Shown here: piece by piece, positions 1,496 to 16,330 of the stretch | Numbering within the stretch: position 1 is the first letter of the stretch | Layout of the letters: every line of letters begins with the position of its first letter | NCBI GenBank assembly: GCA_964199315.1 | Contig: OZ116699.1 | Location: forward strand, 37,014,001-37,078,000 | Direction: 5' to 3' | DNA: 64,000 nucleotides | DNA from: Orbicella franksi | Taxonomy: Eukaryota | Position numbers and translations under genes: made by a program | Notes under the pieces: generated by a model | Databases searched by the model: none | What the model saw: the letters and a program-made list of their open reading frames with translations, nothing else | What the model was told of the DNA's origin: nothing

Positions 1496-4331
1496 ATGGT
1501 TTCCAAGGCGCAAACAACTATCGTTCTCCTGACATGCGCAGTATTACTGCTCCTTGTCCAACCAACTGTGAGCCAACAGGATGCACTGCGATGGGGCAAG
1601 AGGGACAGCGGTCTATCGGAGGAGTATGCGCCAGAAAACGTACGAAACTGGCGGAGACAACAGGAAAACAAACGAGAATATTACGGTATGCCTGCATGCA
1701 TTATGGTCATCTTAAACACTTAGCATATGCTTACATGGTGTAGTTATTTCTTCGATGGATAGATCACTAGCTTTCTGTTTATTTGCGTCTTTTTTTTTTT
1801 TTTTAAATCACAATCGCTTATTTTTTTACTGTTATCTATTTTCGGCTGCAATCAATCGAACGGCGATAGCCATAGCAGATAACAGAGTGTCGGTAACTCT
1901 TTGACATAAATAAGTGATACATTTTAATTTGAATATCTTATTGAGCTCGACCCACTTTGATCCCTACGCCTTCGGGCTGCCTTTCTCTAACGACACGAGC
2001 CTTAGCGGAAACATAGGATTAATTTAATCAGATTATCAGCAAATCAAAATTGTGATCGGGAGAGTTCCACATGAATAACTGCGAACTGATGATATCAATA
2101 TTTGGAGAAAAGGAAAAAAGGAATTACTTTGTTTTCCATATGTTTAAGTACTATTCTCTAATTATTTCTTGAAATTTCATACCATCTAAAAAAATACAGG
2201 TGATGTGATGAAGAAAATGGTCCCACTGTCGTTTATAAATGTTTTTTATCTTGAGGCGGTTATGATCTTTAGCATGTTTCATAGTAAACTGCCTACATCC
2301 AGTTTACTAAAGAGATCGAAGAAAATGGAAAACTTCCTTTTCTAGACTGTTTGGTAAGCCGCGACAACAACGAACTGCGAACGACAGTGTACAGAAAACC
2401 GACGCGTACCGACAGTTAACTTGACGAATCATATTACAACCCGACCTCACACAAAGCCACGGCTATAAAGGCTTCGAGGAGACGAGCGTAACTAGTTTGT
2501 GACACACCGGACAGCTTACGTGACGAAAACAGATACCTTGAACTTGTTTTTCAGAAAAACAACTACAACGCTGACTTTATTAGACGAAACATTTACCGAA
2601 CTACTGAAGCTGACGCAACGAACAGGAACCCAACACCTGTTACTACAGTGACTATACCTTACATTATGGGCACTTCTGAGACCTTCTCACGGATCCTGCA
2701 GCCCTACATGTACAACATCCTTGTAGGCCACAAACCTACAACTACGTTACGGCACTTACTGACCAACGTGAAAGACAGCGACGAACCTAACAACAGACAG
2801 GGAGCCGTTTACAAGATCAAATGCTCCGACTGCCAGGCTTCCTACAATGGTGAGACTGGCAGAAACCTTAACACGAGACTGACTGAACACAAACGAGCGA
2901 CGAGAAATGGTGATGCCAACAATCACATTGCTGTATATCATCAACTGACAAACCACAACATTGACTGGGACTCTGCTCAGTGCTTAACCTCTGGACTCTG
3001 GAAAGCTGGTACACTAACCTAGAACAAACGCCAACAGATGTCAACAACTACCATCGCATTACAAACCTTACGTCGCCTTACATGACGGAAACGAAACCGA
3101 CAAACGGACTTCTGACAGACTGACTTAATTTGACTAACAATACACGGACCAAAAACCGACCAGTTTGACTAACAATAGACGGATCGAAACCGACCAATGA
3201 CTGATGACAAACTTAACACGAGTCCTTCAGCCAATACCATCATGGCTAAACTGACCAGACTTACAACATCATCGACTGACAAACATTCACTTGACTCTGA
3301 AGATGACTTCCGCTCAGGTTGTCGAAACGTCGGTCACCAACAACAGTTCTTTTCAGAACTACCCTCACCCGGACAATCACACTATACGAACTACTTTTAA
3401 CTTGTTTGTGAAGAAGAGAAAGAGATGACGATTAGCGAATTTGATTTAAAAAATAAATTTGAAATATACAAGGAAAATTCAAACTAAAATAAAGATTTGA
3501 AATAAGAAATTTATAGTAATCTTTAGATGAGCCCCATAGACTTCCACCCCCAGTCCGAAGTTCCAAAAGCGGTTTTCTACTTTGTTATGTACTTGCGTTT
3601 CCTTTGCCCCATTTGTTAAAAAATAGCTTAGTACTCGTTTTACCCAGAAGTCCGTTACATATTTGTACGCTGCTGTTATTGGCTGAGCTAACGCAAAGTG
3701 GGATTTATTTTTTTTTAATATTGTAACTGTTTTGCATCAGCTTCCTTAGCTCTTAGGTAAGTACATAGCTATGCCTAACCGAAATGTTGATTCACACTAA
3801 TGCACAAATCCAATTGTTTGATGGGCCCCGCATTTTTGTAGCTTTGTTTTGAAATCGCAGCCTGATCTAATACTTCCCTTCAGTCAGGGAGAAACTACAT
3901 GCCTCGTCATATTTAGTTGAAACTTATACAAATGCTTCAAATTTCGATCACATCAACTAGTAAAAAAACTTGTCAAAGTCCCCTTTCCCCTTTCAATCTT
4001 TGAAAATGCCAAAACACATTTATACGTCCCTTCAAAGGTCAAATTATTTTGTCAACACTGCACAGGGGTGGGGAGGGGCAAAATGTGTGAAAACTGAAGT
4101 GTTTCAACAATTATGATGAGGCTTATAGTTCTTTGAAACGCACGTGTGAATTCCTTAGAAGCTCATCAGACGTTACAGGGAGTAAAATGACATGGCTTAA
4201 TAGTTTAGAAGGCTATTTTAGTACAAAAAGCATTGAACGTAAAATCGGTTCTTTTTGACTGAATTATGACTTCATTTATTTTAACAGGCCAAGAGAGGCG
4301 CAGAGATGTTCCAGAATATGTCTACAATTGA
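1496..4331 (+). CDS. RWamide (LRWamide / Antho-RWamide-like) neuropeptide precursor 1; exons 1496-1685 and 4288-4331; 77 aa
   Basis: Acceptor (ttttaatccggcag) directly before the ATG. Hydrophobic signal peptide MVSKAQTTIVLLTCAVLLLLVQPTVS is followed immediately by QQDALRW-G-KR (amidation Gly plus dibasic site). Phase-1 donor G|GTATGC at 1686 joins acceptor tttattttaacag at 4287 in frame, giving ...KREYYGQERRRDVPEYVYN*. AATAAA at 4413. Confidence 0.85.
2295..3395 (+). mobile_element. 5'-truncated, degenerate Penelope-like retroelement (RT C-terminus plus GIY-YIG endonuclease) in intron of precursor 1
   Basis: Translates to IQFTKEIEENGKLPFLDCLVSRDNNELRTTVYRKPT (PLE RT end) and GAVYKIKCSDCQASYNGETGRNLNTRLTEHKR (GIY-YIG), with stops and frameshifts. 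Ends in a typical PLE tail. Confidence 0.9.
3292..3336 (+). ncRNA. Minimal type-I hammerhead ribozyme motif in the PLE tail
   Basis: TGACT-CTGAAGA-T-GAC(ttCCgctcaGGtt)GTC-GAAAC-GTC-GGTCA: both core boxes (CUGANGA, GAAA), a GUC cleavage triplet (cut after 3331), helix I TGACT/GGTCA with one G-U, and a palindromic ACGT in place of helix III. PLEs are known to carry such motifs. Confidence 0.6.
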
Positions 4332-4412
4332 GACATCGCTGAGGCGTGTATTTTAGTTCAAAAGGAGAGAGATATTGTGTAGAATATTTACGTACATCAT
4401 GTGTATGACTGT

Positions 4413-16300: not shown

Positions 16301-16330
16301 GTAGCTGTTTCTTTTCGGTGTAAAGGCCAT
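10365..16330 (-). CDS. DEG/ENaC (ASIC / HyNaC-like) ion channel subunit, complete; exons 16330-15413, 14605-14446, 13720-13661, 11083-10864, 10680-10589, 10486-10365; 523 aa
   Basis: Family motifs occur in order: TTLHG, TM1 (RLLWALILIGSFSYCSYDI), FPAVTICN, GQCYTFN, thumb cysteines (YSKSACLMQC..KCGCHP, VPFCAP..LC, CEEDCPEPC), ENIVSLDIYF, TM2 LFATLGGTFGLFLGMSMLTVLEF. All six exons have GT/AG boundaries with compatible phases (0,1,1,2,1); total 1572 nt. Confidence 0.93.
12871..13585. mobile_element. Non-autonomous DNA transposon with ~135-bp TIRs and TTAA flanks (Kolobok-like), with a nested repeat; copy at 29535-30249
   Basis: 12871-13004 is the inverted match of 13451-13585. TTAA at 12867-12870 and 13586-13589; termini AG...CC fit the RR...YY rule of Kolobok. 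In copy B the right TTAA is mutated to GTAA. Confidence 0.65.
13897..14375. mobile_element. PIF/Harbinger-like MITE in DEG/ENaC intron 2 (also in copy B, about 30561-31039)
   Basis: Imperfect TIRs ggacctgttcatgcggagagttgtcc and (reverse complement) ggacctgtttacatggagtaaagctgttcc. Confidence 0.45.

Follow-up and report, generated by a model that had tools for sequence, protein, structure and literature searches.

Two single-copy RWamide precursor genes and a convergent DEG/ENaC channel gene in the coral Orbicella franksi

The RWamide precursor genes

Models based on open reading frames and splice sites, built for the 64,000-nt window (the whole stretch of DNA analysed here), place two paralogous single-copy RWamide preprohormone genes, hereafter referred to as P1 and P2, on the forward strand, and a DEG/ENaC gene on the reverse strand (16330..10365) converges tail-to-tail on them. 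Both precursors were located at the positions given for them in an earlier note on this DNA, and the complete DEG/ENaC gene described there was recovered as a six-exon model of exactly the same length, 523 aa. The stop codons of P2 and the channel are separated by 1167 bp, in agreement with the gap of about 1.2 kb noted earlier, and no gene, conserved ORF or Rfam match was found between them. The features of the locus are as follows.

1496..1685, forward strand: P1 exon 1, with the ATG at 1496, signal peptide, QQDALRW-Gly-Lys-Arg and an acidic spacer; based on the ORF and a phase-1 GT donor after 1685
4288..4331, forward strand: P1 exon 2, with the last 14 codons and the stop; acceptor and frame conserved in comparison with L003
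6659..7656, forward strand: conserved non-coding block upstream of P2, containing the P2 5'UTR exon and presumably the promoter
8491..8694, forward strand: P2 coding exon, with the ATG at 8496, signal peptide, QLPGIRW-Gly-Arg and a propeptide with a conserved GKLWGLLKKR motif; RNA contigs in X1 and X3
9169..9353, forward strand: P2 last exon, coding at 9169-9197 and with a 3'UTR to at least 9353; conserved in L003
10365..16330, reverse strand: DEG/ENaC gene of 523 aa, with coding exons 16330-15413, 14605-14446, 13720-13661, 11083-10864, 10680-10589 and 10486-10365
28200..44823, unstranded: second copy of a 16.6-kb tandem duplication (first copy 11565-28198; self-BLAST, 97-98.7% identity)

The P1 product comprises 77 aa, its C-terminus agrees with the annotated Oculina protein P0085 and AATAAA signals are present at 4413 and 4430. 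The signal peptide runs directly into a single Gln-led copy of the peptide (...LLLLVQPTVS/QQDALRW, cleavage by the -3/-1 rule), which predicts pQQDALRWamide as the mature peptide; cleavage at a different site could instead give pQDALRWa or a longer form. An identical peptide is found in the orthologues of L003, L004 and L005 and in the proteins P0082-P0090, the amidation and processing signal RWGKR is kept across all the homologues, and the dN/dS of the gene is 0.18. Antho-RWamide family 10, as published (PMC7523074), lists no DALRW peptide of the P1 type, the nearest entry being the Montipora QKHGLRW precursor. The predicted pQQDALRWamide is a new and widely conserved RWamide contributed by the present analysis, together with precise models of the two precursor genes.

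The P2 product comprises 75 aa, with poly-A signals at 9445 and 9470. Its splice junction 8694/9169 (GT..AG) is present in the RNA contigs of two poly-A RNA runs and is also supported by the JGI transcript product P0089, which ends in DDTAQDKEVS. A single Gln-led copy again lies directly after the signal peptide (...MYSQNVEG/QLPGIRW, by the same rule), and the signal RWGR is kept across all homologues. The predicted mature peptide, pQLPGIRWamide, is identical to the family 10 peptide already described from Discosoma and Ricordea (PMC7523074). A profile search yielded 34 coral homologues (P0072-P0105), and the propeptide can be aligned to the Discosoma, Ricordea, Acropora and Montipora sequences of Additional file 10 of the same study.

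P1 and P2 share with the Antho-RWamide single-copy preprohormones (family 10; Koch and Grimmelikhuijzen 2020, PMC7523074) the single peptide copy placed after the signal peptide, the N-terminal Gln and the C-terminal RW-Gly followed by a basic site, and as judged by sequence the two genes are tandem paralogues in this family. Several RWamide genes on one scaffold have been described in Montipora and Discosoma, and a linkage of RWamide genes with DEG/ENaC genes goes unmentioned in the family 10 description (PMC7523074).

The conserved block upstream of P2 shows 70-79% DNA identity to L003, L004 and L005 and carries stops in every frame. The part of an RNA contig that overhangs upstream aligns at 7507-7536, within a P2 5'UTR exon of at least 83 nt whose 3' end lies at 7538 and is followed by a GT donor at 7539. 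A hidden gene or RNA in the block was considered and rejected, as the block holds this exon and contains neither a conserved ORF nor an Rfam match. Several smaller conserved non-coding blocks also lie inside the cluster.

The DEG/ENaC gene and its relatives

All introns of the channel gene are of the GT-AG type. Matches to the Pfam ASC family (PF00858) were obtained for exon 1 (E 2.3e-45) and, at the profile end, for the last exon (E 1.6e-5). The product carries HG at residues 50-51, FPAVTICN at 109, a GMS filter at 495, two hydrophobic segments (about 52-78 and 490-509) and an ectodomain with 15 Cys between residues 115 and 399, and would form a trimeric amiloride-type cation channel. A five-exon model of 503 aa was dropped when Oculina paralogues exposed the 60-nt exon 13720-13661. 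Identity to the orthologues is 64-68%, and the dN/dS against two of them is 0.35.

The nearest named relatives of the channel are ASIC-like. Among the solved structures, ASIC2 and ASIC1 are the closest (E 1e-27), whereas FaNaC scored 6e-16 and 1.5e-10; the channel is far closer to ASIC1/2 than to FaNaC and is therefore placed outside the FaNaC/WaNaC clade B family. What the locus shares with the peptide-gated clade B channels, Platynereis MGIC and molluscan FaNaC, is the idea of one amidated peptide family using both a GPCR and a DEG/ENaC, the channel itself being excluded from the family. The earlier note had proposed a phylogenetic placement, and in our trees, which left out the HyNaC, NeNaC1 and NeNaC24 sequences (database searches gave no Hydra sequence), the channel groups with NeNaC27/28 of Nematostella in one well-supported anthozoan clade. 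NeNaC27 and NeNaC28 (Aguilar-Camacho et al. 2023, PMC9822975) share with it motifs spread over the entire protein, namely LHG, FPAVTICN, KVLVHD, QPGxxTFCS, CxxNDT, CPxPC, LSYA and GLFLGMS, at about 33% identity and in a many-to-many rather than a 1:1 relation; the text of that study does not place the two in a subclade. The channel probably belongs to an anthozoan-specific, ASIC-side expansion of the DEG/ENaC family, with NeNaC27/28 as its closest Nematostella members.

The two convergent genes differ in their representation in bulk RNA contigs, P2 being spliced and abundant and the channel low and unspliced. No spliced channel transcript was found in the RNA contigs examined, which gave unspliced, low-depth coverage only. 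In the raw-read runs X22 and X23, of which 12% of the reads were sampled, no read fell on P2 or the channel and the matches were to repeats only.

Conservation of the gene order in anthozoans

The order P1-P2-channel, followed by a ZP gene, was also observed in L003, L004 (Oculina patagonica) and L006. In four coral genomes, among them a deeply diverged, Montipora-like one, P2 has a DEG/ENaC of the same subfamily as its tail-to-tail neighbour, and an RWamide-adjacent channel is present at four of the six coral loci, one with a paralog switch: in L006, the deepest comparison, P2 is flanked by a channel from a different paralog clade (AU p = 2e-5). The remaining two loci, L005 and L012, have lost it. 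In L005 (Pocillopora-like), P1, P2 and the ZP gene are intact, only the last exon of the channel remains and 1.4 kb stands in place of about 6 kb of Oculina sequence. In L012, a close relative, P2 is joined directly to the homologue of window positions 45885-49975 and the whole channel block is absent. Each of these losses was seen in one assembly. The peptide genes survive without the neighbouring channel, and the linkage is thus dispensable. A metagenome scan gave eight loci, of which four were usable coral contigs and one was long enough for synteny.

In the sea anemones, no RWamide ORF was found within 10 kb of the nearest channel homologues of Actinostola, Actinia and Nematostella; the Oculina paralogue likewise has none within that distance. 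In Nematostella, the NeNaC27/28-like genes are arranged head-to-tail in tandem, and the 28.5 kb sampled there contained no RWamide gene. The lack of linkage at the actiniarian loci is a soft negative, as orthology to the coral channel is weak (30-34% identity). The microsynteny that the earlier note proposed to examine is thus borne out for the order in L003, L004 and L006 and fails in L005, L012 and the three actiniarian loci.

The synteny of the ZP gene beyond the channel equals that of the channel itself, and dS to Oculina and L003 is about 0.6. The linkage therefore looks like ordinary retained gene order, and linkage above background synteny and across orders, as expected of a functional module, was not found. 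Across the apparent deepest split sampled it is, nevertheless, more persistent than pure chance, and an old local association, such as an array of channel genes that stood next to the peptide genes in an ancestor, would fit this persistence.

Interpretation of the linkage

P1, P2 and the channel are most probably ordinary, separately functioning neighbours by descent, kept together by the slow rearrangement of coral genomes, a reading to which we assign a probability of roughly 0.68. Processing by the known steps of peptide biochemistry would remove the signal peptide after ...TVS in P1 and after ...VEG in P2, the exposed N-terminal Gln would be converted to pyroglutamate, and cleavage at KR (P1) or R (P2) with amidation from Gly would give pQQDALRWamide and pQLPGIRWamide. 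The coral RWamides would most likely act via class-A GPCRs, by analogy with Nematostella, where, as the earlier note had pointed out, LRWamide-type peptides have been matched to GPCRs; four high-affinity GPCRs respond to them with pM-nM potency (PMC11087051). The block P1-P2-channel-ZP would then represent inherited stony-coral synteny rather than a demonstrated ligand-receptor unit.

Corals carry about 21-29 DEG/ENaC genes (PMC9822975). Chance alone may place a DEG/ENaC immediately beside some neuropeptide gene with a probability of a few percent in one genome, a figure that is our own rough estimate and assumes about 25,000 genes per coral genome. The adjacency is unremarkable when many windows are scanned; the earlier note had likewise cautioned that it could be due to chance.

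Alternatively, the channel and the peptide genes could be co-expressed through shared enhancers in the same sensory-motor neurons, the channel contributing to sensing or excitability in RWamide neurons with no ligand-receptor relation to the peptides. The 1-kb conserved block and the smaller ones in the cluster are consistent with such regulation, as is the presence of P2 and channel sequence in the same poly-A RNA runs. However, the promoter and 5'UTR exon of P2 itself account for the large block, P2 is well expressed whereas channel RNA is low and unspliced, and in L005 and L012 the peptide genes persist although the channel is lost, which makes a shared regulatory neighbourhood unlikely.

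The neighbouring RWamides could instead directly gate the channel, as a homomer or as a heteromer with its paralogues, or modulate it strongly, the linkage persisting through co-evolution. This is favoured by the tail-to-tail order kept in four coral genomes, the deep comparison included, and by the peptide-gated precedents HyNaC, FaNaC and MGIC. HyNaC and Hydra-RFamide present a likeness, a cnidarian DEG/ENaC combined with short pQ...R-aromatic-amide peptides that are released at neuromuscular sites; HyNaCs assemble only as heterotrimers and belong to subclade II, whose named Nematostella members include NeNaC1 and NeNaC24. We know of no genomic linkage between HyNaC and RFamide genes, and clusters of ligand and receptor genes are rare in animal genomes. 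The direct response of isolated muscle cells to Antho-RWamides (PMC7523074) also speaks for gating, although the earlier description of these as fast excitatory peptides is overstated, the cited physiology being contraction of slow sphincter muscle and an increase in a Ca2+ current. High-affinity GPCRs already explain LRWamide signalling; a parallel ionotropic receptor is, however, compatible with it, since Platynereis Wamides signal through both receptor types (as cited in PMC9822975), and the deorphanisation study points to DEG/ENaC-related channels as the group to search next (PMC11087051). The screen of Nematostella channels found no peptide-gated member (PMC9822975), and NeNaC1, 2, 5, 8, 14 and 1+24 showed no current in response to pQGLRWamide (PMC9822975 supplement); the NeNaC27/28 branch, the closest to the coral channel, lies outside the tested set. 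Taken with the resemblance of the channel to ASICs and not to FaNaC, the different paralog in L006, the unlinked actiniarian loci, the two lineages with intact peptide genes and no neighbouring channel, and the failure to see spliced channel mRNA in the RNA contigs, these observations make gating by the neighbouring peptides improbable.

A broader version, in which NeNaC27/28-like channels are ionotropic RWamide receptors of an ancient anthozoan pairing beside the known GPCRs, with paralogues elsewhere buffering turnover or loss, is likewise doubtful. If true, it would provide the first anthozoan peptide-gated channel and a ligand and receptor whose genes are linked in the genome, a rarity among animals. 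Gating by RWamides, if real, would add a third DEG/ENaC lineage in which peptide gating evolved and would account for the direct effect of Antho-RWamides on muscle; if false, a plausible lead would be closed. The linkage yields a concrete and inexpensive shortlist, in which three or four RWamides are paired with the channel, its 531-aa Oculina orthologue and NeNaC27/28, and the lineages of L005 and L012 offer natural comparative controls.

Finally, the channel copy may be silent or turning into a pseudogene in a structurally unstable region, a functional link being then moot in this species; the tandem duplication is partial, its breakpoint lies in intron 3 of the channel gene, the second copy carries only exons 1-3 (33001..30326, by tblastn) and dN/dS between the copies is about 1, to which may be added the missing spliced transcripts, the relatively high dN/dS against orthologues and the deletion of the gene in related lineages, yet decay is hardly probable, as the ORF of the first copy is intact, its six exons are canonical and no family motif is missing, its dN/dS against both orthologues is clearly below 1 and coverage of the channel 3'UTR and last exon in a poly-A library suggests some transcription.

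Gene models and transcription in the window

Two RWamide preprohormone genes (P1 and P2) on the + strand and a DEG/ENaC channel gene on the - strand were located in the window, which is eukaryotic stony-coral DNA, has a G+C content of about 38-40%, contains no assembly gaps and has its nearest annotated proteins in Oculina patagonica; coral RNA and metagenome libraries are the public runs in which its sequence occurs. The earlier note had described such a precursor pair and a complete channel of 523 aa, with about 1.2 kb and no visible gene between them, as a candidate linked ligand-channel module. 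All of this was confirmed: both precursors were recovered where it had placed them and the six-exon channel model gives the same length; the P2 and channel stops are 1167 bp apart, with nothing coding and nothing Rfam-like in between.

Features of the two precursor genes and the channel gene
1496-1685, + strand: P1 exon 1, ATG at 1496 and GT donor after 1685 (phase 1); MVSKAQTTIVLLTCAVLLLLVQPTVS then QQDALRW-G-KR
4288-4331, + strand: P1 terminal coding exon, 44 nt, from alignment with the second coral L003
ending at 7538, + strand: P2 non-coding first exon, from an RNA contig, followed by a 952-nt GT-AG intron
8496-8694, + strand: P2 coding exon, ATG at 8496 and intron after 8694; MTSSYKLALLLIIPCVLLSMYSQNVEG then QLPGIRW-G-R
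9169-9197, + strand: P2 terminal coding exon, 29 nt, product 75 aa
16330-15413, 14605-14446, 13720-13661, 11083-10864, 10680-10589 and 10486-10365, - strand: channel exons 1-6, from homologue-guided tblastn and splice-site reading

The acceptor, the frame and the downstream AATAAA of the P1 terminal exon are all kept in L003, and the 77-aa product has a C-terminus, ...EYYGQERRRDVPEYVYN, matched by the end of the annotated Oculina protein P0085. The phase-1 intron position is identical in P1 and P2. Contigs from two poly-A RNA runs directly span the P2 splice junction, as does a JGI transcript whose product ends in ...QLDDTAQDKEVS; an RNA contig extends further upstream, with an overhang mapping uniquely to 7507-7536, and P2 thus has a non-coding first exon. 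A 1-kb non-coding block at 6659-7656 (70-79% identity in three other corals, stops in all frames, no Rfam matches) contains this 5'UTR exon and presumably the P2 promoter or enhancers. Mobile-element remains include a GIY-YIG-like ORF in the P1 intron (2648-3022, transposon debris), a tRNA-like SINE in the P2 intron (about 8900-9130) and another repeat in channel intron 3 (13080-13280, transposon debris).

All channel introns are GT-AG. The first copy of the gene is intact and is under purifying selection, because its dN/dS against two orthologues is about 0.35. A 16.6-kb tandem segmental duplication (11565-28198 and 28200-44823, identity 97-98.7%) may be a genuine duplication of recent date or the product of haplotype collapse or expansion; its left boundary lies within channel intron 3, so the second duplicate carries channel exons 1-3 only (33001..30326), with a dN/dS of about 1 against the first.

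Poly-A RNA libraries of one coral contain both P2 and channel sequence. When RNA reads and contigs were mapped onto 8480-14479, P2 was found spliced and well covered, and the channel was represented by low-depth contigs running unspliced through introns 4 and 5, limited in one library to 10030-10634 (the 3'UTR, last exon, intron 5 and part of exon 5). None of these reads and contigs showed a channel splice junction, and channel transcription is therefore possible at most. Of the 12% of reads sampled from two deep raw-read runs, none fell on P2 or the channel. The repeats in the P2 intron and channel intron 3 reached summed RNA-contig depths of hundreds to thousands, and such depth can mimic expression.

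Families of the peptides and the channel

All three genes add new members to known families. All hexacorals were shown to have preprohormones in which the signal peptide is followed immediately by one RWamide copy (Koch and Grimmelikhuijzen, PMC7523074); the peptides listed include pQLPGIRWamide in Discosoma and Ricordea, pQGLPGIRWamide in Pocillopora and pQLLGIRWamide in Acropora and Montipora. In the sequence file of that study, several RWamide genes share a scaffold in each of Montipora and Discosoma, and no DALRW peptide occurs. A profile search recovered 34 coral homologues, which split cleanly into a P1 type, with an almost invariant QQDALRWGKR (variants QMDALRW, QEQALRW and QKDALRW), and a P2 type, with QLPGIRWGR, QGLPGIRW, QGKLPGIRW or QLLGIRW. 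The P2 peptide is thus already known, and P1 is a new, well-conserved member of the described family. Its mature N-terminus is predicted by the -3/-1 rule, and pyroglutamate and amide ends would be expected in the peptides from standard processing. A further conserved element, GKLW(G/E/S)L(L/M)K(K/R)R (P2 residues ~49-59, window 8640-8680), occurs in every P2-type precursor, including those of Discosoma, Ricordea, Acropora and Montipora; it may represent another product that is not amidated, or serve as a motif for sorting or processing.

The channel protein matches the Pfam ASC profile (E 2e-45) and has a His-Gly before TM1, a post-TM1 FPAVTICN motif, a Cys-rich ectodomain and a G-M-S filter in TM2. 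Among proteins of solved structure, ASIC2 and ASIC1 match it best (E 1e-27), with FaNaC (E 6e-16 and 1.5e-10) and partial ENaC matches far behind. Motif matching in the sequence file of PMC9822975 identified NeNaC27 and NeNaC28 as the closest Nematostella relatives, in one group with Actinia tenebrosa 6, Pocillopora 00008814 and Stylophora 15983. The earlier note had proposed placing the channel in a DEG/ENaC phylogeny; in our own tree, the channel and these relatives fall within one well-supported anthozoan clade (SH-aLRT 99) apart from bilaterian ASICs.

Conservation of the linkage and its interpretation

The genomic surroundings of channel orthologues and precursor homologues were compared. 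Microsynteny, another check proposed with the module idea, held at the stony-coral loci L001/L003, L004 and L006, was lost at L005 and L012, and was not found at actiniarian loci. L001/L003 (an ENA coral assembly; channel exon 1 65-68% identical) has P1(+), P2(+), channel(-) and a ZP-domain gene(-) in the order and orientation of the window, and gene order is the same in L004 (Oculina patagonica chromosome CM126636.1; annotated channel 531 aa). P1, P2 and a convergent DEG/ENaC are also present in L006, from a third ENA assembly, whose Montipora-like precursors suggest a 'complex'-clade coral. Synonymous divergence of the window from Oculina and L003 is only about 0.6, so that conserved gene order is what would be expected by default. 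The most economical reading, to which we give a probability of about 0.68, is that the three genes are independent and have stayed neighbours because stony-coral genomes rearrange slowly; their linkage counts as a lead and not as a finding.

Two coral lineages separated by a deep split both have a DEG/ENaC of one subfamily next to P2, and this keeps alive, as an improbable alternative, the idea that the RWamides act on the neighbouring channel. However, the tree places the L006 channel (12707-17068) outside the window/L003/Oculina orthologue clade and with another paralog lineage containing Oculina G004369 (by locus-tag spacing an estimated tens of megabases distant on the same chromosome). 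Constraining the L006 channel to the orthologue clade cost 111 log-likelihood units (AU p = 2e-5, for a constrained group named after the tree had been seen). This paralog switch counts against the idea and points to a local array of channels in the ancestor or to replacement of one paralog by another.

Further evidence against it comes from two natural cases in which the channel is gone and the peptides remain. In L005 (12714-14247) P1, P2 and the ZP gene are intact and the channel is reduced to its last exon (80% identical); exons 1-5 and the promoter are gone, with 1.4 kb in place of about 6.1 kb of Oculina sequence. The precursor there carries QGLPGIRW, as in Pocillopora. L012 (1-10297), on a 15-kb JGI coral-metagenome contig from a close relative (P2 80% identical), is collinear with the window from 8435 to about 10019 and then homologous to 45885-49975, so that it lacks the 36 kb in which channel, ZP gene and duplication lie. 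Moreover, the unrelated ZP gene on the far side of the channel is equally conserved (window, L001, L004 and L005), and the linkage is missing in sea anemones: no [RK]WG[KR] reading frame lies within 10 kb at the nearest homologues in Actinostola (L007), Actinia (L008) and Nematostella (L009), a soft negative since these are only 30-34% identical to the channel. None occurs within 10 kb of the Oculina paralogue locus L002 either.

High-affinity receptors of another class count further against direct action: as the earlier note had mentioned, LRWamides are matched to GPCRs in Nematostella, where the three LRWamides activate four class-A GPCRs with EC50 values of 7e-11 to 9e-8 M (PMC11087051). 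At nanomolar doses, sphincter muscle and isolated muscle cells contract in response to Antho-RWamides (PMC7523074), which also raise an inward Ca2+ current; these effects are compatible with both modulation and direct gating. Neither an RWamide-gated channel nor RWamide-DEG/ENaC linkage turned up in full-text literature searches. No currents were obtained when Aguilar-Camacho et al. tested 27 peptides on NeNaCs; pQGLRWamide was tried on NeNaC1, 2, 5, 8, 14 and 1+24 only, and NeNaC27/28 were not expressed (PMC9822975). The NeNaC27/28 branch thus lies outside the published peptide screen, which makes the ligand-channel idea easy to check. In Nematostella (OW051997.1, 10.70-10.73 Mb; L009 1-28500), a stretch of 28.5 kb contains three NeNaC28-like genes in head-to-tail order, and at least six such members with 90% identity or more are found on this chromosome; the array is a recent tandem expansion of the NeNaC27/28 subfamily.
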